From the sequence record KT919972.1: a stretch of DNA of 64,000 bases. One strand, 5' to 3'. Every line of letters starts with the position of its first letter. Positions within the stretch are counted from its first letter, which is position 1. Below the pieces are notes generated by a model. That model saw nothing but the letters and a program-made list of their open reading frames with translations. It searched no databases and was not told the DNA's origin. Position numbers and translations under genes: made by a program. Positions 18,600 to 51,328 of the stretch are shown piece after piece.

Positions 18600-19625
18600 A
18601 TGTCACACGCAATCTTTATCGGACGCTTTCGTCCATTCCACAACGGTCATCTATCTGCAATCACTCAAGCATTCGACGCGCTTGATCTAGACAAGATGAC
18701 TATCTTAATCGGTAGCTCTAATCGACATCGTTCAGTTAAAAACCCTTTCACGTTCGAAGAAGTACGCGATATGATGGGTGTTGCTTTACCTGACGATATT
18801 CGAAGCAAAGTTCGCTTTGTACCACTAGGTGATTACGCGAAAGACGACGTTTGGCAGTCAAATGTTCGTGCTAGTACGAAAGGCGCCACTCACATCGTTG
18901 GTTACGACAAAGACGAAAGCAGCTACTATCTCAAGCTATTCCCTGAGCTAAAACTATTTCAACCTGAACCAGTGAAGATGTATAACAGAGTTATCTCTGC
19001 AACTGACTTCAGAGAACTGTACTTCAGCGAGATTCTACTGAATCACCCTGTTATGTCTGGTCTGATTCCCAAGCAAACAATGATGTTTCTTGACGATTGG
19101 AGCAAAACAGAGCATTTCACTGAAATGAAAGCTGAATACGATAGCTCAGTGCGCGAAATCGAGAAGTTTCTCGACTACCCTTACCAAGGTCACTTGAATA
19201 TCGCGTGTGCTGACAGCGTTGTGATGTGTGCAGGTCATGTTCTTCTTGTCGAGCGTAAGTTCAACCCAGGCAAAGGCTGTTTAGCATTACCTGGCGGTCA
19301 TAAGCATGAGAAAGAAACATTCTTAACTGCTGCGATTCGTGAACTACAAGAAGAAACTAACATCAAAGTCCCAGAGAAAGTCTTGCGTGGCTCGCTCAAA
19401 GATGAGAAGATGTTCGATAACCCAAATCGCTCTTACCCACACACTCGCATCACAATGGCATATCACTTCAAAGTGCAGCCAAACCCTGACAACACTTTCC
19501 CGAAAGTGAAGCCAGCCGATGATGCTGTATCAGCGAAATGGTACTCACTGAGTGAAGTAATGGACATGCAAGAACGTTTGTATGACGATCACTACCAAAT
19601 CATTCAGTATTTCACTGGCATCTAA
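18600..19625 (+). CDS. natV: Bifunctional NMN adenylyltransferase / Nudix ADP-ribose hydrolase (NadM-Nudix)
   Basis: FIGRFRPFHNGH, SATDFR; Nudix box GG..E..AAIRELQEET; DDA..A.W..DH. Confidence 0.93.
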   Translation: MSHAIFIGRFRPFHNGHLSAITQAFDALDLDKMTILIGSSNRHRSVKNPFTFEEVRDMMGVALPDDIRSKVRFVPLGDYAKDDVWQSNVRASTKGATHIVGYDKDESSYYLKLFPELKLFQPEPVKMYNRVISATDFRELYFSEILLNHPVMSGLIPKQTMMFLDDWSKTEHFTEMKAEYDSSVREIEKFLDYPYQGHLNIACADSVVMCAGHVLLVERKFNPGKGCLALPGGHKHEKETFLTAAIRELQEETNIKVPEKVLRGSLKDEKMFDNPNRSYPHTRITMAYHFKVQPNPDNTFPKVKPADDAVSAKWYSLSEVMDMQERLYDDHYQIIQYFTGI

Positions 19626-19631
19626 CTAATG

Positions 19632-19650
19632 GGGGCAGTAATGCCCCTTT
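19632..19650 (+). terminator. Probable terminator
   Basis: GGGGCA-GTAA-TGCCCC-TTT. Confidence 0.65.
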
Positions 19651-19662
19651 GAGGAAATTAAT

Positions 19663-19935
19663 ATGAGCATTAAACAATTAGCAAAAACTGAAGTAAACAA
19701 TTACAACACTGCATACGTAGATGTATACAAAATTCGTGAAGATATGATTGCAAAGTACTCTGCTGCTCGTGCATGTGTTGAACGCGGCGATGGTACTATG
19801 AAAAACTGTACATTACGTCGTGAAATCTGTCGCGCTCTTGATAATTCTAGTGATTGGAATAAAGTTGCTAAGACTGATTCTGGTCGTCTATTGTATCAAC
19901 GAGTGAAAAGCAATTCACTAGAGAACTTTGTATGA
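19663..19935 (+). CDS. Hypothetical protein
   Basis: GAGGA RBS; 90 aa. Confidence 0.7.
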   Translation: MSIKQLAKTEVNNYNTAYVDVYKIREDMIAKYSAARACVERGDGTMKNCTLRREICRALDNSSDWNKVAKTDSGRLLYQRVKSNSLENFV

Positions 19936-20282
19936 ACGCATACCGAATCAACACATCAATCGAAGATCTAGCAATAGTAAAAGGCGATTTGTTTGTTCAA
20001 AGTCCATTCAATGAACATGAATATAAAATGGCTCGTCAACCCCAACGACCACCAATGCACATCGACTTGATTACTCAGTTTCATCATCTTTATAATGAAA
20101 CGACTGCTACTGATGACGAAATCGCTGAATTGGTTCTAGAATGGAAGAATCAATTCAAAACACGAACCGAAGCATTGAATATGTTTCGCCAATCACTAAT
20201 CGAACAGCGCCAATCGATTGATGAACAAATCAAACAAACTACATCTACCATTGAACAATTACGTGAAAAGTTCGGAGAGTAA
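19932..20282 (+). CDS. Hypothetical coiled-coil protein
   Basis: 116 aa; ATGA overlap. Confidence 0.7.
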   Translation: MNAYRINTSIEDLAIVKGDLFVQSPFNEHEYKMARQPQRPPMHIDLITQFHHLYNETTATDDEIAELVLEWKNQFKTRTEALNMFRQSLIEQRQSIDEQIKQTTSTIEQLREKFGE

Positions 20283-20283
20283 T

Positions 20284-20910
20284 ATGCACGCATATGACTT
20301 AGTAAGAAAAATGCAAAAGGTTGTTGAGTCTTGCGAGACAATTGAACAACTACGCAATGCAAGAAAGTACCTCATGCGCTGTCAAGACTATGCACTCGAT
20401 GGTGGCAATGATAGCTACATCACTACTATCATGGTAGAAGTGCAAGACTTAGACGAACGCATCACCGATAAGATTGTTGAGTTGTCTGATACTCGTGGCA
20501 TGAACGCTATCGAAACTGGCGTTATCAAAGTCGGCATCGATATTCATGGCGTAATTGATCAATCACCAGAGTTCTTCGCGCTGTTAAGCAAACTACCAGT
20601 TGAAGTGCATATCATCACTGGCATTAAAGAAGAACTCGATACTGATGTACCAGATGACTTAGAGTATGAGCACTGGTTTAGCATTCATCAATCATGTGAA
20701 GACGACGGCGTTGAAATCTTGTACGACGAGAAAGGTCGCCCATGGGTCGATGACGAAATCTGGAACAACAAGAAAGCTGAATACTGCCGTGAGAATCAAA
20801 TCAATATCATGATCGATGACTCACCAACGTATGCTAGAACCTTCGAAGGTCTTGATACTTTCTATCTACAACTAACCAATACTGTTCGTGATGAATGGAG
20901 ACGCAAATGA
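20284..20910 (+). CDS. HAD-like phosphatase/nucleotidase domain fused to a helical N-domain
   Basis: VGIDIHGVID and IMIDDSP motifs. Confidence 0.7.
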   Translation: MHAYDLVRKMQKVVESCETIEQLRNARKYLMRCQDYALDGGNDSYITTIMVEVQDLDERITDKIVELSDTRGMNAIETGVIKVGIDIHGVIDQSPEFFALLSKLPVEVHIITGIKEELDTDVPDDLEYEHWFSIHQSCEDDGVEILYDEKGRPWVDDEIWNNKKAEYCRENQINIMIDDSPTYARTFEGLDTFYLQLTNTVRDEWRRK

Positions 20911-22964: not shown

Positions 22965-23510
22965 ATGAAATTAGTTACTACTACTCGTACAAAACATTAT
23001 GTCAAAAACTTCGATTACATCCGTATGACACGAGGCGAAAAATCTCGTATGGGAAATGTTGTACGTACGTTCAGTCCTAAAACAAAAGAACCAATCTTTA
23101 TCATTGAAGATGTTTTCGGCGGACACACAACTCAAATCAAATCCGATGAGTGGAAATATGAAATTCAACTCAATGATTTGTGGCACAAAGCAGAGTTCGC
23201 TTGGTACGACCGTGACGTGAAAGAATCAAATGTACTAGTATACTACAAAACAAAAGAAGACGTGAAAGAACTCAATGTAGGCGATGTTATCCCTGTTCAT
23301 GCTAGTACGTGGGAGAGCGGCAAAGGCGACAGAGTTCTGAGTGAAACAACTGTCAATGCTTGTATCATTGCATTGAATAACATGCAACTAGTGACAGTCA
23401 TCAACGGAAAATATGTCGTATTTGATTTGCGAACGTTCGACTATACTCATTATAAGCGTTCTACAACAGATGGCTATTATCTGCGTGCAGACTGTTCATT
23501 ACGTGCGTAA
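22965..23510 (+). CDS. Hypothetical protein (paralog of 24666-25274)
   Basis: ELNVGDVI..NGKYVVF..DGYY. Confidence 0.75.
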   Translation: MKLVTTTRTKHYVKNFDYIRMTRGEKSRMGNVVRTFSPKTKEPIFIIEDVFGGHTTQIKSDEWKYEIQLNDLWHKAEFAWYDRDVKESNVLVYYKTKEDVKELNVGDVIPVHASTWESGKGDRVLSETTVNACIIALNNMQLVTVINGKYVVFDLRTFDYTHYKRSTTDGYYLRADCSLRA

Positions 23511-23601: not shown

Positions 23602-23710
23602 TGTGTATAAATCTGTGGATAATATGTGTATGAGATTGTGCATAAGTGTCTGAAATCTGTGTATAAAAACATGATTTAGCTGTGCATAAGTCTGTGGATA
23701 ATGTGGATAA
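23602..23710. promoter_or_regulatory. Cluster of eight co-oriented DnaA boxes (candidate origin or DnaA-titration site)
   Basis: TGTGGATAA at 23614, 23693, 23702; TGTGTATAA at 23602, 23658; TGTGCATAA at 23637, 23681; TGTGTATGA at 23625; in a ~370-bp noncoding gap. Confidence 0.8.
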
Positions 23711-23817: not shown

Positions 23818-23847
23818 TTGACAGCCAGCGGCATTATGTGAGAGAAT
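23818..23847 (+). promoter_or_regulatory. Probable sigma70 promoter
   Basis: TTGACA-18-GAGAAT with upstream TG. Confidence 0.55.
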
Positions 23848-23880: not shown

Positions 23881-24027
23881 GTGATTACATTGGCGTTATT
23901 TTATATGAGTCGCGACATGAAATACTGTGAGCGACCAAGTGACTTGTACCTTGGTACATGTATTTTAGACTTTGCATTAATCGCCACGATGTTCTGTGGT
24001 GTAATGATGTTCACAGGGAATTGGTAA
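23881..24027 (+). CDS. Small membrane protein (48 aa)
   Basis: GGAGG RBS, GTG start, TAATG overlap with next gene. Confidence 0.55.
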   Translation: MITLALFYMSRDMKYCERPSDLYLGTCILDFALIATMFCGVMMFTGNW

Positions 24028-24350
24028 TGTTGTTTAAGAATTACAGAGTGAATCGCCATGTTCGTGCTCGTGCTATAGAGTTATTGAATTGTGGTGAGTT
24101 GCATCGCGTGTATACTTGTTTAGAGTTACATCGTGGTGTGAGTGACGAGATGGTTAGTTTGATTAAGCTTAAACTAAAGCATTTGCAGCGTATGTACGTA
24201 CGGCAGAGTGATTTGCCGAATGATTTAGAAGATTGTTATTCTTTTATCTGTGCGTATCACCCGCCTTGTGAGCGTCGTAAGTTGCGTGAATATGAGCGTA
24301 AGTCGTGGTTGAAATACATTATAGAGAACATTAATAAGGTTAAGATATGA
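24027..24350 (+). CDS. YTC/RxxWL family protein, member 1
   Basis: VRARAIELL..YTC..FIC..RKSWLKYI. Confidence 0.7.
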   Translation: MLFKNYRVNRHVRARAIELLNCGELHRVYTCLELHRGVSDEMVSLIKLKLKHLQRMYVRQSDLPNDLEDCYSFICAYHPPCERRKLREYERKSWLKYIIENINKVKI

Positions 24351-24655
24351 AGAAGTACAGATTAGGTAATTTGTTGCGTGGTGGTTGGTCTGGTGAGTTT
24401 TCCAGTCTTGAAGAAGCGTGGGTTCAGTTAGGTTCGCGTTTTCTACTATCATTTCCGTGTGAGAAATGGGAGAAAGACATTGGTATGTCTATCAATGAAG
24501 ATGGTGGTCGTACTGTGTATATGTATGTTCAAGAAGAGAACAAGTATGGTCAATTAGATTGGGCTTGTTGTAAGAACGGTGTGTTCTATATGAACGAACG
24601 AGTGCCAGTAACGGCAGACGATTACAAGCGTTGCAGTGATGTAGAATTTTTCTAA
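24347..24655 (+). CDS. Hypothetical protein
   Basis: 102 aa; ATGA overlap. Confidence 0.7.
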   Translation: MKKYRLGNLLRGGWSGEFSSLEEAWVQLGSRFLLSFPCEKWEKDIGMSINEDGGRTVYMYVQEENKYGQLDWACCKNGVFYMNERVPVTADDYKRCSDVEFF

Positions 24656-24665
24656 GGGTTATAAG

Positions 24666-25274
24666 ATGAAACGAATTGAAAGACATAAGAAAGTAGTAGA
24701 CAAGAAAGCGATTATGCCGAGCGGTAGTATGGTACGAGTTGAGACGTACTACAACACATGGTCTGGTTATTTGAATTGCCTTGACTCAGGTGATGGTATA
24801 CGTGGTATAGAGCAACCGACTTATATGCTAGTATCTGACAATGGTGCTTTTTACTCAGTTGAAGAAGATAAAGTAAATGGTAACAAGCAGACACAGACAA
24901 AATACGATGGTCAGTTGGTACTTGTACATGCTCGATTGAAGTTGTCAGCGAAAGATTGGGATTGGTACCCTTGTAAGTGGAAGAGTGGTCGTCTTGTATA
25001 TGCGTATAAAGAAACTGATTTTGTCGATGAAGAGCACGAGCTAGTGGTTGGTGAGATTATAGACATTTATGCCGCAAGCGATAGTACATCGTCATATGCA
25101 CATGACGCGACAGTTGTTGTATCACGTCCGACACAAATTGCTGTTGAGACGTATGGTAAACTAGTAGTGTTTACGGTTGGTTCTGATACAGATGAACTAG
25201 TATCTGATTGTGGTGATTATCGTATTGATGGTCGATATGCTGCTAGTCAGTACGATGAAGAGCTTCATTCGTAA
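24666..25274 (+). CDS. Hypothetical protein (paralog of 22965-23510)
   Basis: ELVVGEII..YGKLVVF..DGRY. Confidence 0.75.
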   Translation: MKRIERHKKVVDKKAIMPSGSMVRVETYYNTWSGYLNCLDSGDGIRGIEQPTYMLVSDNGAFYSVEEDKVNGNKQTQTKYDGQLVLVHARLKLSAKDWDWYPCKWKSGRLVYAYKETDFVDEEHELVVGEIIDIYAASDSTSSYAHDATVVVSRPTQIAVETYGKLVVFTVGSDTDELVSDCGDYRIDGRYAASQYDEELHS

Positions 25275-25280
25275 AAGTTA

Positions 25281-25319
25281 AAGAAAAGGGTTGCGCTATG
25301 CAGCCCTTTTTTATATTCT
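25281..25319 (+). promoter_or_regulatory. Terminator/promoter cassette; left 31-bp direct repeat
   Basis: AAGAAAAGGGTTGCGCTATGCAGCCCTTTTT; TTGCGC-17-TATTCT. Confidence 0.85.
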
Positions 25320-25343
25320 ACAGTTTTTGAATTGGAGGATAAT

Positions 25344-26414
25344 ATGACTAGAATTAAATGGACACCTGAACGTCTTAAAGAAGATGCGTTGAAATACAAG
25401 ACTCGCCAAGAATGGAAGAAAATGTCATCTGGATACTCTGCTGCTCAGAGTAGGGGTATAATTGATGAGTGTTGTGGTCATATGACAATGCATCAAAAAC
25501 CTAAAGGGTATTGGACACTTGAACGTCTTAAAGAAGATGCGTTGAAATACAATACTAGAAGTGATTGGCAGAAAATGTCAGGCAGTGCTTATGATGCTGC
25601 TCATAAGAAAGGGTTGCTTGACAAGTGTTGTGGTCATATGAAGGCATCAACTAAAAACGCATTTTCTCGCTGTATATATCGAATCTATGCAGGTAATGAG
25701 ATTTACATTGGGTTGACTTACGATACTAAGCAACGCTTTAGTTCTCATCGAAAGAAAACAACTCAGGTCATAGACCTAATCGAACGTCATGGCATTGAAA
25801 ACGTCAAGTTCGAGCAATTGACTGAGTATATGAATCAAGAACTGGCGCAAATTGCAGAGAAAGAACACATTGAGTACTACAGAAACAATGGATGGATTAT
25901 TTTAAATCGTTCTAAAGCTGGTGCATTGGGGAGTTCAACATTAAAATGGACACCTGAACGTCTTAAAGAAGATGCGTTGAAATACAAGACAAGTTCTGAG
26001 TGGCGGAAAATGTCACCCAGTGCTTACGCTGCTGCTCATAAGAAAGGATTACTTGACGAGTGTTATGCTCATATGACAATGCATCAAAAACCTAATGGAT
26101 ATTGGACACTTGAACGTCTTAAAGAAGATGCATTGAAATATAAGACTCGCCGAGAATGGAGGGAAAACTCTAGCGGTTGTAGTAATGCTTATAACCAGGG
26201 TATAATTGATGAGTGCTGTGCTCATATGGAATTACAAAGAAAACCTAATGGATATTGGACACTTGAACGTCTTAAAGAAGATGCATTGAAATATAAGACT
26301 AGAAGTGATTGGCAGAAAAACTCTAGCGCGGCTTATTCTTCTGCTAATAGAAAGGGGTTTCTTGATGAGTGCTGTGCTCATATGACAAAGAACGCTCGTT
26401 GCAAGCGAAAATAA
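25344..26414 (+). CDS. GIY-YIG (Seg-like) free-standing endonuclease with five ~50-aa repeats
   Basis: CIYRI..IYIGLT..KQR..H..E..I..Y..LN core; 2 N-terminal and 3 C-terminal WT.ERLKEDALKY..C..HM repeats. Confidence 0.85.
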   Translation: MTRIKWTPERLKEDALKYKTRQEWKKMSSGYSAAQSRGIIDECCGHMTMHQKPKGYWTLERLKEDALKYNTRSDWQKMSGSAYDAAHKKGLLDKCCGHMKASTKNAFSRCIYRIYAGNEIYIGLTYDTKQRFSSHRKKTTQVIDLIERHGIENVKFEQLTEYMNQELAQIAEKEHIEYYRNNGWIILNRSKAGALGSSTLKWTPERLKEDALKYKTSSEWRKMSPSAYAAAHKKGLLDECYAHMTMHQKPNGYWTLERLKEDALKYKTRREWRENSSGCSNAYNQGIIDECCAHMELQRKPNGYWTLERLKEDALKYKTRSDWQKNSSAAYSSANRKGFLDECCAHMTKNARCKRK

Positions 26415-26417
26415 TTG

Positions 26418-26492
26418 AAGAAAAGGGTTGCGCTATGCAGCCCTTTTTAGTATTATAGCTTTATCGAAACGACAACGACTAAAGAGAATATT
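26418..26492 (+). promoter_or_regulatory. Terminator/promoter/leader cassette; right 31-bp direct repeat
   Basis: Same 31-mer as 25281; TTGCGC-17-TATTAT; ATCGAAACG leader. Confidence 0.85.
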
Positions 26493-26810
26493 ATGCAAAT
26501 CATCAACGAAACTAAGTCATTTACTGTTTCACGTCACCCGCGTGGTGGTATGCGCCATGAGCTTGATAAAAGCATGTACGCGAAGAACGGTAATGCTTTG
26601 TCTTCAGTTCGCATTTATCTAGCTGCTGAATATGGTATGATTGAAGGTCAAGACTACACAATTGACAGTGGTATGACTTATACACTGCTACGTATTGAGC
26701 GCATTAACGAGATTAATGCCAAGAATAATTTCTTTCAAGTCGGCGAATACTACGATTTAGACATCGATTTTGCTTCTAACACTGTACGTATGTACCAAGA
26801 TAAGGGATAA
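26493..26810 (+). CDS. Hypothetical protein
   Basis: First gene after cassette; 105 aa. Confidence 0.75.
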   Translation: MQIINETKSFTVSRHPRGGMRHELDKSMYAKNGNALSSVRIYLAAEYGMIEGQDYTIDSGMTYTLLRIERINEINAKNNFFQVGEYYDLDIDFASNTVRMYQDKG

Positions 26811-26814
26811 AACT

Positions 26815-27222
26815 ATGAAAATTCTACCAGATTTCCTTGATAACACTGAAATTCGCCGTGTAATTAGCGAAAAAGCACTGGAATTACGTCAAAATACCGC
26901 GATTTTAAGCGATGAAGACGCTTACACGTGTCATATTTTAGAAGATTTCGTTGCTGACACGCTTGGTGAACTGTGTCGCTTAAAGGCTATGCGTATCATT
27001 CAAGATAACGGTAATGCTTTCTGTGAGCATTTACAAGCTAACCCTGAAGCTGTATTTGGTCGTGAATTGACTTCAACTGAAGCTGAATATCTCAACGAGA
27101 TTTTTCAAAACAAGCTTAGTGCATTTGTACATAGCGTATCGCGTGTATTTGAAGATGCCGATGATATTGATTTTGTATTTGTGCGTAAAGCATGGTTAAA
27201 ATTCTTGATTAATTCACTATAA
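26815..27222 (+). CDS. YTC/FxH/RxxWL family protein, member 2
   Basis: ISEKALEL..AYTC..AFVH..RKAWLKFL. Confidence 0.75.
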   Translation: MKILPDFLDNTEIRRVISEKALELRQNTAILSDEDAYTCHILEDFVADTLGELCRLKAMRIIQDNGNAFCEHLQANPEAVFGRELTSTEAEYLNEIFQNKLSAFVHSVSRVFEDADDIDFVFVRKAWLKFLINSL

Positions 27223-27240
27223 AAGCAAAAAAAGTACAAA

Positions 27241-27308
27241 AAGTGGTTGCGTGATGTAGCCACTTACTGTATTATTCTCTTATCGAAACGAGATACAGAG
27301 AGAACATT
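27241..27308 (+). promoter_or_regulatory. Terminator/promoter/leader cassette
   Basis: AAGTGGTTGCG..TGTAGCCACTT hairpin; TTGCGT-17-TATTAT; ATCGAAACGAGATAC. Confidence 0.85.
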
Positions 27309-27482
27309 ATGACTTACGCAAACGCTACTAAAATCGACGCAATTGAACTTGTTATGTCAATGACAGAAGACCAGTTCTACGACCTTATTGCTGAATCAAA
27401 TGCAAATGATGATTACGCGTTTTCTGCAAAAGTCATGAAAGCTCAATCTGACTTACGTCGCGCTGGTAAAATTAACTACTAA
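27309..27482 (+). CDS. Hypothetical protein (57 aa)
   Basis: Begins at the cassette ATG. Confidence 0.65.
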   Translation: MTYANATKIDAIELVMSMTEDQFYDLIAESNANDDYAFSAKVMKAQSDLRRAGKINY

Positions 27483-27486
27483 GTGC

Positions 27487-27543
27487 TTGACACTTCCACC
27501 AGCAATAGCCGATAATAGCTTTATTGAAACGAGAGAGAACATT
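27487..27543 (+). promoter_or_regulatory. Early promoter with cassette leader
   Basis: TTGACA-18-GATAAT; GAAACGAGAGAGAACATT-ATG. Confidence 0.75.
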
Positions 27544-27795
27544 ATGAACTTAATCACACGCAGCAAAATCAATCACGATTCACTTTGGCTTAAAATCTTG
27601 ACTGCTGATAAGAGCGAAGTAAAGCTATTCATCGGTCGTACTGGTGTTAAAATCAGTCACAAAACGACTGCTGCTTCAGCTACTGTTATGCGTGAAATCG
27701 CGAACAACGTAAACAAAATGTTCAATGAGCTATACAAGAGTGGTTTGCCTTACGGTCAAATCATTGAGAAAATCGAAGCAGCTTACAAGGGATAA
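27544..27795 (+). CDS. Hypothetical protein
   Basis: 83 aa from the cassette ATG. Confidence 0.7.
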   Translation: MNLITRSKINHDSLWLKILTADKSEVKLFIGRTGVKISHKTTAASATVMREIANNVNKMFNELYKSGLPYGQIIEKIEAAYKG

Positions 27796-27798
27796 GAT

Positions 27799-28233
27799 AT
27801 GAGAGCAATTGAGAAATCAGAAATCATCAAAGAAATTCGCGCAATGGCTGCTGAAATGTCTAATGACAATGGCTTACTTGCAGACTCTTACGAGTATAGC
27901 TGTTGTATTGTCATTAATCGTGTTTCAGATTTGTTTGAAGCTCGATATGACTTGTCGAAAAGAGAAAAAGCAAGACTTTATGCACCATGTAATGAACATG
28001 TAGAAGAAGCAGGTCTTGAGTTTGTTAAAACTGTCATTGCAGACTCTTACGGTGTACTTGGTTTTATTCTACCAGAAGATACAATCGATGAACTACAAGA
28101 CGATTTTGATTGGGGTCTAGCAGGTGCTTTTGTACACGCGATTGCTCGTGCATACGGGCCGTTGAATAAAGAACATTTCGTAGCAGCACGTAAAGCATGG
28201 TTGAAATTCTTGTCACAGTACGAGGGAAAATAA
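27799..28233 (+). CDS. YTC/FxH/RxxWL family protein, member 3
   Basis: IRAMAAEM..YSCC..AFVH..RKAWLKFL. Confidence 0.75.
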   Translation: MRAIEKSEIIKEIRAMAAEMSNDNGLLADSYEYSCCIVINRVSDLFEARYDLSKREKARLYAPCNEHVEEAGLEFVKTVIADSYGVLGFILPEDTIDELQDDFDWGLAGAFVHAIARAYGPLNKEHFVAARKAWLKFLSQYEGK

Positions 28234-28234
28234 A

Positions 28235-28612
28235 ATGAATCTACATGAACGCATTCGCCAAGCCGCGACTGAATTACTTGAAGATGACATCACTTCAAAC
28301 ATCAATAGCTATACGTGCAATCGCATTGCCGATGATATTTCATCTAGTAGCATTTACACTCATTGCGAGGTTAAAGCAGTTATTCGTGAACTCGCTGAGT
28401 CGTTCTTATATGCTGTATTGCGTAAGCCAGTCGAAACACTTGGTTTTGAACCAGAAGAGGCAGCGCGTTCTGAACTAAAGTCTATCGTAGCTGATAAATT
28501 CTATTCGTCTGCTTTCATTCACGTGATTGCTATGCACGATAAAGACGTTGACTCAGAGTGTTTTGCAACAACTCGTAAAGCATGGCTGAAACATATCGTG
28601 GAGAATGTGTAA
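28235..28612 (+). CDS. YTC/FxH/RxxWL family protein, member 4
   Basis: IRQAATELL..YTC..AFIH..RKAWLKHI. Confidence 0.75.
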   Translation: MNLHERIRQAATELLEDDITSNINSYTCNRIADDISSSSIYTHCEVKAVIRELAESFLYAVLRKPVETLGFEPEEAARSELKSIVADKFYSSAFIHVIAMHDKDVDSECFATTRKAWLKHIVENV

Positions 28613-29034
28613 TGAAACATCTAAGTGAAATCAAAGTAGCTGCCGCTGAACTGCTAGAAGATGGTGATATTTTAACTGATATGTACGGCTATACGTGTAA
28701 TGAAATTGCGTTTCTTGTACGTTCTACAAAAGATGTAATGGAAAAATATTCGTCTTACGTTGACGTGAAAACCACGTTATCCGAGATTGCAGCCCCATTT
28801 GTTAAGCGAGTTTATGACAACGCAGTACAAGGCAAAATCGACTTGTCTGAAGCAGCAATGTCTAAGCTCAAAGCATGTCTAAACGTCGATTATTACCGCG
28901 GTACGTTTATTCATGATATTGCAATTAAAGACGATGGTAAAATTGACATTGAGTTATTTACTGAATATCGTCGCCAATGGCTAGAGTTTATCTTGACTCA
29001 ACCAAGCGAATACGAGAACCGTAGAAATGCTTAG
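28612..29034 (+). CDS. YTC/FxH/RxxWL family protein, member 5
   Basis: IKVAAAELL..YTC..TFIH..RRQWLEFI. Confidence 0.75.
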   Translation: MKHLSEIKVAAAELLEDGDILTDMYGYTCNEIAFLVRSTKDVMEKYSSYVDVKTTLSEIAAPFVKRVYDNAVQGKIDLSEAAMSKLKACLNVDYYRGTFIHDIAIKDDGKIDIELFTEYRRQWLEFILTQPSEYENRRNA

Positions 29035-29509
29035 TCTAGATGAACGGCTTGGTATTCTCGATGAGATACTAAGCTCTAAAACACCAGATGAGATACTAGC
29101 TGAATTGCATTCGTATCCCGCCATTGGTCCAACTGTAGAAGAATTCACAGAGAATTTCCCTATGACGTTACAAGAACATATCAAAGCGGCTGCTGAGAAT
29201 CTACTCGCTGAATCGAAAACTGACAGTACAGTGTTAAACGATTACACTTGTTGCCAGATTGCTGAAACCTTGTTTAATGACAAGCGTAATGCACATGAGC
29301 TTAGAACAACATACGAAGAACTGGATAAAATCAAAGTACCATTCTTAGATTCGCTTGATATTCCGCCTCAAGACAAAAAAGCTGCAAGTCATTTGTCTGC
29401 ATTCTTGAGCTTTATTACAAGGGATGACAAGTCGAAATTGCATGAGTATCGTGTACAATGGTTGGAATTTATCATCGCCAATATAGAGGTATCAAATGAC
29501 TTTAACTGA
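29027..29509 (+). CDS. YTC/RxxWL family protein, member 6 (N-terminal extension)
   Basis: IKAAAENLL..YTCC..AFLS..RVQWLEFI. Confidence 0.75.
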   Translation: MLSLDERLGILDEILSSKTPDEILAELHSYPAIGPTVEEFTENFPMTLQEHIKAAAENLLAESKTDSTVLNDYTCCQIAETLFNDKRNAHELRTTYEELDKIKVPFLDSLDIPPQDKKAASHLSAFLSFITRDDKSKLHEYRVQWLEFIIANIEVSNDFN

Positions 29510-29846
29510 ACTAGCAGTAGATCATCCGTATTACTGTGCCGATTGTAATTACTATAGTAACGAGTCGGGTGGCGTATTTGAAACAATGACAGAGTTTTTA
29601 GACGAGTTTGAAGGCGCTGACGTTGACATGAACTTGGTATTCCGTTGGGATGTGAAGCCGAACTTGTCTGAAGAAGATGAAACACCGCTTGATACGTACT
29701 ACGCCGAGATCTTTATGATGCATCAACGTAAAGGTATTTTCGCTCCGTTCTTCATTCGTTCTATTACTGAAGACGAAGTACCACGCTTTGTCGAGTACTT
29801 GAAAGAACATCATCAAACACTACAACAACTATGGCAGCCACTATGA
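29496..29846 (+). CDS. Conserved acidic phage hypothetical protein
   Basis: DHPYYC..D.DMNLVFRWD..QRKG. Confidence 0.75.
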   Translation: MTLTELAVDHPYYCADCNYYSNESGGVFETMTEFLDEFEGADVDMNLVFRWDVKPNLSEEDETPLDTYYAEIFMMHQRKGIFAPFFIRSITEDEVPRFVEYLKEHHQTLQQLWQPL

Positions 29847-51010: not shown

Positions 51011-51328
51011 ATGGTATTCACTGAAGAGCAGCTTGATCAAGTCGAGCACAACTACTCGCATATTGATACTGTCAATCTTGCAGATAGAAAGGGCGTGCCA
51101 CAAGCGAAGTATGTCATAGAGATACGACAAGGCACGTATACTAAATTCAAAACATCTTGGTTAAGTCAAGATTCATGCGAAGAGCGAGATATTGACCCGG
51201 AGCTAGTCGGTTATTGGATCTTATCAGACGCAATCGACCCTTATTGGTACTCAGTTCAAGAATGCTTAGAGCAGTATGAATGGGAACCAGCACGCGAAGT
51301 AACAATCACAACATGGGAAGCAATTTAA
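51011..51328 (+). CDS. Acidic hypothetical protein
   Basis: GAGGT RBS before ATG 51011. Confidence 0.65.
   Translation: MVFTEEQLDQVEHNYSHIDTVNLADRKGVPQAKYVIEIRQGTYTKFKTSWLSQDSCEERDIDPELVGYWILSDAIDPYWYSVQECLEQYEWEPAREVTITTWEAI

Follow-up and report, generated by a model that had tools for sequence, protein, structure and literature searches.

A CmdA-like head fused to a predicted all-helical domain within a six-member paralog family of Vibrio phage phi-Grn1

CmdTAC, also termed PD-T4-9, is a recently described system of three genes, which encode in order an ADP-ribosyltransferase toxin (CmdT), its antitoxin (CmdA), and a SecB-like chaperone (CmdC) (PMC9519451); it acts as a toxin-antitoxin-chaperone (TAC) abortive-infection defence against T-even phages (PMC11618068). 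CmdA has a pair of helices at its N terminus, followed by a long disordered tail whose last residues are LAA; during infection CmdC, the protector of CmdA, binds newly made major capsid protein, ClpP degrades CmdA, and CmdT ADP-ribosylates mRNA (PMC11618068). Removal of the tail makes another TAC antitoxin independent of its chaperone (bioRxiv 10.1101/2024.02.24.581848). In the phage genus Schizotequatrovirus, a pan-genome study places “a component of the PD-T4-9 defense system” among the accessory genes, counts nicotinamide adenine dinucleotide (NAD+) salvage genes as counter-defence, and finds the variable regions enriched in defence and anti-defence genes (PMC12028318). Here we analyze a family of six small paralogs, M1 to M6, encoded in the last 64 kb (the window) of the Vibrio phage phi-Grn1 (KT919972.1), one of which, M6, joins a CmdA-like antitoxin head to the domain that defines the family.

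M6 (phiGrn1_0297, 160 amino acids; 29027–29509, + strand) is the only one of the six to match the PADLOC profile PD-T4-9_B. Its residues 1–45 (29027–29161, +) correspond to the N-terminal head of CmdA, at positions 1–46 of the 77-position profile; tested alone, the first 46 residues match positions 1–43 with an E-value of 2.5e-12, leaving positions 47–77 unmatched. Residues 46–160 (29162–29509, +) take the place of the disordered CmdA tail and form a domain of phrog_4354 (PHROGs v4, function unknown), which matches residues 45–153 (E 4e-21) and carries Ser for the His of a family motif considered below. At the level of sequence, these matches demonstrate both the homology of the M6 head with CmdA and the two-part architecture of the protein. 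The M6 orthologues in QD01 and nt-1 (ORF049), and the cluster representative P0023, also match PD-T4-9_B.

A word search with the M6 head located P0046, an 88-residue metagenomic protein that shares 48% identity with the head over 44 residues (BLASTP E 1e-10) and is encoded between genes that match PD-T4-9_A (E 5e-74) and SecB/PD-T4-9_C (E 2e-38). Querying the phage collection with the toxin and chaperone of the P0046 operon returned one further complete system, annotated PD-T4-9 A/B/C, in the P2-like Vibrio cyclitrophicus prophage PQ189358.1 (L016 2480–3750); its B protein aligns with M6 over 70 columns with 41% identity (BLASTP E 1e-12). The operon in PQ189358.1 sits in a variable region of the prophage, as reported for the Escherichia coli system. 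Both P0046 and the Vibrio prophage CmdA have a low-complexity tail and an Ala-Ala end. In contrast, M6 has neither, and the folded phrog_4354 domain follows directly after residue 45. The first helix of the M6 family domain (29171–29200) and residues 61–69 of the Vibrio CmdA tail are identical in 6 of 10 columns, a short similarity that may reflect chance or a trace of the fusion junction.

The remaining parts of a CmdTAC system were sought around M6 and its relatives. Among 4,817 open reading frames (ORFs) from the window and related phage loci, bacterial CmdA matched M6-type ORFs only (E 4e-10 to 2e-5), and CmdT and CmdC matched none; nor was CmdT or CmdC present in any Schizotequatrovirus or Mylasvirus record of the phage collection. 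The immediate neighbours of the M6 gene are M5 and ORF 0298, rather than toxin or SecB-like genes. M6 is found in ValKK3, VS1, QD01, and nt-1; it is cleanly missing from phi-ST2, Va3, and VH7D, and missing also from KVP40 and V05.

The remaining members are, like M6, encoded on the + strand: M1 (phiGrn1_0286, 107 residues, 24027–24350); M2 (phiGrn1_0291, 135 residues, 26815–27222), orthologous to KVP40.0177 with 72% identity; M3 (phiGrn1_0294, 144 residues, 27799–28233), orthologous to KVP40.0179 with 46% identity; M4 (phiGrn1_0295, 125 residues, 28235–28612), which was chosen for structure modelling; and M5 (phiGrn1_0296, 140 residues, 28612–29034). An initial annotation, made from the sequence of the window, had described these six ORFs as a paralog family with four tandem members, a description borne out in both respects, with M1 the weakest member. 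M3–M6 are contiguous: one base separates M3 from M4, M4 and M5 overlap by one base, and M5 and M6 overlap by eight. A Shine-Dalgarno-like sequence precedes each of the six ORFs. By pairwise BLASTP, M2–M5 are mutually linked (E 1e-6 to 1e-16) and M6 is joined to M4 and M5 (E 4e-4). A hidden Markov model (HMM) built from M2–M6 recovers M1 with significance (E 3.4e-7) among the 683 six-frame ORFs of the window; the next match has an E-value of only 0.57, so the window holds six members and no seventh. M2–M6 all match phrog_4354 over their full length (E 4e-21 to 1.3e-41). These five are acidic (isoelectric point, pI, 4.6–5.2), with M1 the exception (pI 9.4).

M1 is a divergent and shortened member. 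Its match to phrog_4354 is weak (E 5.2e-5) and confined to the N-terminal part, and it is otherwise filed under phrog_18902. Comparison of the M1 orthologues with the rest of the family by hhalign gives a probability of 94.5% over the N-terminal 36 columns only, and the C-terminal helices of M1 and M4 are 67% identical over 12 residues. An AlphaFold model of M1 (predicted local distance difference test, pLDDT, 91.8) superimposes on the family models with template modelling (TM) scores of 0.60–0.71; since it was built with the family alignment, it does not lend independent support to membership. GenBank starts M1 at 24150, giving 66 residues, and phi-ST2 is annotated similarly short, while ValKK3 and VH7D annotate the full 107 residues. 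A ribosome-binding site precedes the start at 24027, which overlaps the stop of ORF 0285 by one base, and the GenBank start is placed too late; the truncated annotation explains why PHROGs keeps the short form in a separate family. A shorter M1-type representative, P0016, has one in-frame deletion.

Ratios of nonsynonymous to synonymous substitution rates (dN/dS), calculated for phi-Grn1 against four close relatives, are 0.08–0.48 for M1, about 0.5 for M2, 0.27–0.54 for M3, and 0.33–0.47 for M4 (M2–M4 together span 0.27–0.55), with M5 at 0.12–0.16 and M6 at 0.18. Values for neighbouring genes mostly fall within 0.03–0.25, and nowhere is 1 exceeded. Ratios below 1 for all six indicate that the genes encode proteins under purifying selection, with M2–M4 somewhat relaxed or diversifying. 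Chance ORFs are ruled out by the BLASTP and HMM statistics together with dN/dS. The six ORFs are true paralogs, of a family already clustered as an anonymous PHROG and otherwise uncharacterised.

The family is restricted to phages. A profile search of 1.84 billion representative proteins (E up to 0.001) returned only 36 clusters, one of which, P0019 (1067 residues), is a false positive, an immunoglobulin-repeat protein caught through its Y-x-C motif. All named members come from vibriophages (nt-1, ValKK3, phi-ST2, Va3, F86, and D480), and every relative with genomic context is a phage. Copies counted within ±9–12 kb of the array number two in KVP40; three in V05, VS1, and QD01; five in phi-ST2, Va3, and VH7D; six in ValKK3 and phi-Grn1; and nine in nt-1. 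Metagenomic contigs of N4-like phages carry six (L013 278–2969) and four (L014 6981–8758) tandem copies, directly following two N4-type RNA polymerase subunit genes, and a third contig type carries three. One N4-like copy (L013 1042–1581) has an N-terminal extension of about 70 residues with no PADLOC or Pfam match. Two distant members, P0036 and P0039, had no tblastn match in isolated phages. Paralogs within one genome share about 30% identity, much the same as paralogs between genomes, which implies either old duplications or fast divergence. The family is gained, lost, and duplicated quickly, and is common to T4-like and unrelated N4-like phages.

An AlphaFold2 model of M4, based on a 34-sequence alignment, is all-alpha with eight helices (pLDDT 95.8; predicted TM score 0.89). 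A Foldseek search of the PDB with this model gave nothing at E ≤ 0.001 (best E 1.9, TM at most 0.43; OTU entries appeared at E 8–9 with a probability of at most 0.10), and a search of the viral model library BFVD returned family members only. The family sequence profile found nothing significant among PDB chains (best E 0.75). Pfam, NCBIfam, and PADLOC yielded no match at curated thresholds for M1–M5 or for the family domain, and none of the weak Pfam or NCBIfam matches recurred across the 34 members. As modelled, the family fold is confident, all-alpha, and without known relatives. Conserved N- and C-terminal helices surround a highly variable middle, in line with the divergent middles first noted.

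We propose that M6 is a surrogate antitoxin acting against a Vibrio defence of the CmdTAC type and, more weakly, that M1–M5 are non-enzymatic binders built on the same scaffold, a reading to which we give about even credence. In CmdTAC, infection by a T-even-type phage draws the SecB-like CmdC away from CmdA to the new capsid protein; ClpXP, acting on the disordered tail and Ala-Ala end, then degrades CmdA, and CmdT ADP-ribosylates mRNA and stops translation. M6 retains the CmdA head, presumably the toxin-binding part, and has the stably folded family domain in place of the unstable tail. Having kept the head and replaced the tail, M6 should hold CmdT inactive without a chaperone and without being degraded, and so would go on neutralising a Vibrio CmdT once the host antitoxin has gone. 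The divergent middles of M1–M5 may recognise other targets in host defence or takeover. The anti-defence role suggested in the initial annotation thus acquires a specific, checkable form through M6, whose CmdA head gives it concrete if indirect support; for M1–M5 the support is confined to scaffold and context. Small acidic proteins, variable copy number, sharing across phage lineages, and proximity to the NAD+ salvage gene natV are traits expected of anti-defence genes.

Several points weigh against this proposal. The assignment of the CmdA head as the CmdT-binding, neutralising part is presumed from a published AlphaFold model and from other TAC antitoxins. Two scans of representative bacterial genomes contained no relative of the CmdA head (nor did one scan of viral contigs), and the only Vibrio example of CmdTAC found is that of V. 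cyclitrophicus, not V. alginolyticus, the host of phi-Grn1; in a plasmid collection, CmdT occurred in Acinetobacter and Psychrobacter only. The case for M1–M5 is the weaker one, drawing on the shared scaffold, acidic character, variable middle, patchy distribution, and proximity to NAD+ salvage. Early expression of the array is a prediction from strand, gene content, and the lack of a T4-type late-promoter motif, which was not found within 10 kb of the array. Literature searches on the locus tags, the PHROG number, and anti-CmdTAC activity returned no functional data for any member. Lastly, an invariant Cys, an invariant Arg, and an N-capping Thr/Ser, detailed below, are not what a scaffold serving only for binding would lead one to expect, and they might belong to an active site.

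A broader form of the surrogate-antitoxin proposal is conceivable, though we hold it to be doubtful. The phrog_4354 domain might serve as a modular, protease-resistant carrier, either for captured antitoxin heads, of which M6 would be a case, or for toxin-binding surfaces evolved on the domain itself. Under this reading the array would comprise a set of surrogate antitoxins directed at several Vibrio toxin-antitoxin or abortive-infection systems and exchanged between T4-like and N4-like phages.

Alternatively, the paralogs may be host-takeover factors unrelated to defence, binding components of transcription, proteolysis, or chaperone systems, with the M6 head leading to the chaperone or protease rather than to the toxin. 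In T4-type phages, genes for small acidic proteins with no known function that lie on the early-gene strand often target the host machinery, and the N4-like arrays follow phage RNA polymerase genes. In M6, the family domain also stands precisely where CmdA has its chaperone- and protease-binding part. However, what M6 retains is the head and not that tail, and the patchy presence of members among near-identical phages fits accessory counter-defence better than core takeover. We consider a takeover role of this kind unlikely.

A further possibility is that the family domain acts as a small enzyme through a nucleophilic Cys, assisted by the invariant Arg and often by the His, the paralogs differing in substrate. 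The conserved residues were counted over 58 non-redundant domains (≤90% identity). The Cys is present in 58/58, as is a Thr or Ser directly before it; 57/57 have the FxH Phe, the Arg, and the Trp, 56/57 have the Leu after the Trp, and 44/57 (77%) have the His of FxH. These counts uphold the invariant Cys and mostly conserved His of the initial annotation. Of the motifs it listed, three hold exactly as given, R..WL.[FYH], Y[TS]C, and [AT]F[VI]H (with FIC in M1 and FLS in M6), whereas I[RK]xxAxEL is strict only in M4 and M5 and loose elsewhere. In the M4 model the Cys occupies the first turn of helix 3, after an N-cap residue, and reactive thiols often sit in the first helix turn after an N-cap. 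Contrary to an enzymatic role, the Cys, Arg, and Trp are all retained in the 13/57 domains without the His, among them M1, the M6 type, and each of the two domains of a tandem protein described below. No enzyme fold was matched by sequence or structure, and the domain is of about 120 residues and all helical, its other conserved positions being hydrophobic and core-like. We judge the enzyme alternative improbable.

The more specific proposal that the Cys and His form a catalytic or metal site found no support. The replacement of the His in 13/57 domains and the presence of only two potential metal-ligand columns (Cys, 100%; His, 77%; the next best being 65–69% acidic) argue for neither a Cys-His dyad nor a metal site. 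A papain-like Cys-His hydrolase was rejected on the occurrence of the His (44/57), an all-alpha rather than alpha+beta fold, and the lack of a significant Foldseek match; a structural zinc or other metal site was rejected on its two conserved ligand columns, against the three or four required. The invariant Cys, perhaps with the Arg, may nevertheless have a role.

The paralogs might instead assemble into homo- or hetero-oligomers, working as one complex rather than as independent binders. M3–M6 are abutting or translationally coupled, and P0033, a 269-residue protein from a T4-like metagenomic contig (L004 10001–10810, between DNA ligase and uvsY), contains two tandem family domains, which hints at a pairing of family members; all family rows aligned with P0033 fall on its second domain only. 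A copy number ranging from two to nine and the clean loss of single members argue against a fixed stoichiometric complex, and we regard this arrangement as a poor candidate. Finally, M6 could be a remnant or component of a phage-borne CmdTAC-type system, for example one excluding other phages, as its PD-T4-9_B match and the PD-T4-9 component listed in the Schizotequatrovirus accessory genome (PMC12028318) might suggest, but this is hardly credible given that CmdT and CmdC are lacking from the window, the related phage loci, and the Schizotequatrovirus records of the phage collection, and that M6 is devoid of the tail and degron on which triggering depends.

phi-Grn1 is a 248.6-kb KVP40-like, T4-type phage (Schizotequatrovirus, Straboviridae) isolated on V. 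alginolyticus. Window positions equal record positions minus 184605, and 24000–29600 of the window is 100% identical to 208605–214205 of KT919972.1. The array is bounded by natV (nicotinamide mononucleotide adenylyltransferase/Nudix) and tk (thymidine kinase), and the genes around it are all on the + strand and all annotated “hypothetical”. natV and a nicotinate-nucleotide adenylyltransferase-like gene occupy 18600–20900 (record 203205–205515), 3–6 kb upstream of M1, and the KVP40-type NAD+ salvage pathway has been described as counter-defence (NARP2). These genes place the array in a neighbourhood of NAD+/ADP-ribose conflict. Neither Rfam families nor tRNAs were detected in the window.

M1 and M2 are separated by a mobile insertion, the GIY-YIG homing endonuclease gene phiGrn1_0289 (25344–26414, +), which is not a family member. 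Its catalytic domain is flanked by several repeats of about 45 residues rich in Cys and His; it is absent from ValKK3, present in two copies in Va3, and 67–75% identical in phi-ST2 and VH7D. Upstream of the array, phiGrn1_0284 (181 residues, phrog_32648; 22965–23510) has no counterpart in the ValKK3, phi-ST2, Va3, and VH7D stretches, and is a strain-specific insertion immediately upstream of a cluster of DnaA-box-like sequences.

In this cluster, seven TGTGNATAA 9-mers with a shared orientation, each the complement of the DnaA-box-like TTATNCACA, occupy a 109-bp stretch of a non-coding gap (23602–23710, +), about 320 bp upstream of M1. The whole window contains 12 such 9-mers where 4.4 are expected, a count reached in 0/100 shuffles. 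The same relative place holds seven copies each in ValKK3, phi-ST2, Va3, and VH7D, five each in VS1 and QD01, and four in nt-1; the cluster was not seen in the KVP40 and V05 stretches compared. It is presumably the feature that the initial annotation called a putative origin, and its candidate roles include an origin, DnaA titration, and promoter control. The genome paper places the GC-skew origin of phi-Grn1 at record position 51,089, away from the cluster, and cumulative skew in the window merely tracks transcription direction. Two sigma-70-like promoters were found as consensus matches only, one (TTGACA, 18 bases, GAGAAT, TG-extended; 23818–23847, +) upstream of ORF 0285 and M1, the other (11/12 positions; 27487–27516, +) upstream of 0293 and M3–M6; a promoter and terminator scan of the region showed no enrichment over shuffles.

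In the CmdTAC literature searched we found laboratory escape mutants only, and no natural phage countermeasure. If the surrogate-antitoxin proposal is true, a tail-less antitoxin head in a lytic T4-type vibriophage would offer a simple natural means of countering a toxin-antitoxin system that is triggered through its chaperone, and would show that phages capture parts of host antitoxins. The automatic label “defence system component” for M6-type genes probably points the wrong way round. Independent of that proposal, the family domain is an orphan fold, as predicted, expanded in tandem in two unrelated phage groups; it is a good candidate for structural work and for interpreting the numerous early genes without known function in large marine phages.

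The closest described relative of M6 is CmdA (PADLOC PDLC04070; PMC9519451; PMC11618068), with whose head residues 1–45 are homologous. Unlike CmdA, M6 is encoded by a lytic phage, is fused to an unrelated folded domain, and lacks the disordered chaperone-addiction tail, the Ala-Ala end, and an adjacent toxin or SecB-like gene. phrog_4354 is the same family as M2–M6, clustered automatically in an entry that carries no annotation. By analogy, the array resembles the tandem arrays of diversified immunity proteins that adjoin polymorphic toxins in bacteria, each of which is thought to neutralise a different toxin: both comprise tandem, fast-diverging small proteins on one conserved scaffold. Those arrays, however, are bacterial and belong to known immunity families, none of which was matched here in Pfam, NCBIfam, or PADLOC. 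The phage protein Dmd of T4 follows the same logic as that proposed for M6, substituting for the labile RnlA and LsoA antitoxins; in each case a stable phage antitoxin would act when the host antitoxin disappears during infection. Dmd showed no relation to the present family in the PDB profile search, the PDB Foldseek search, or BFVD. To our knowledge, Dmd is not homologous to the host antitoxins that it replaces, whereas the head of M6 is recognisably homologous to a host antitoxin.

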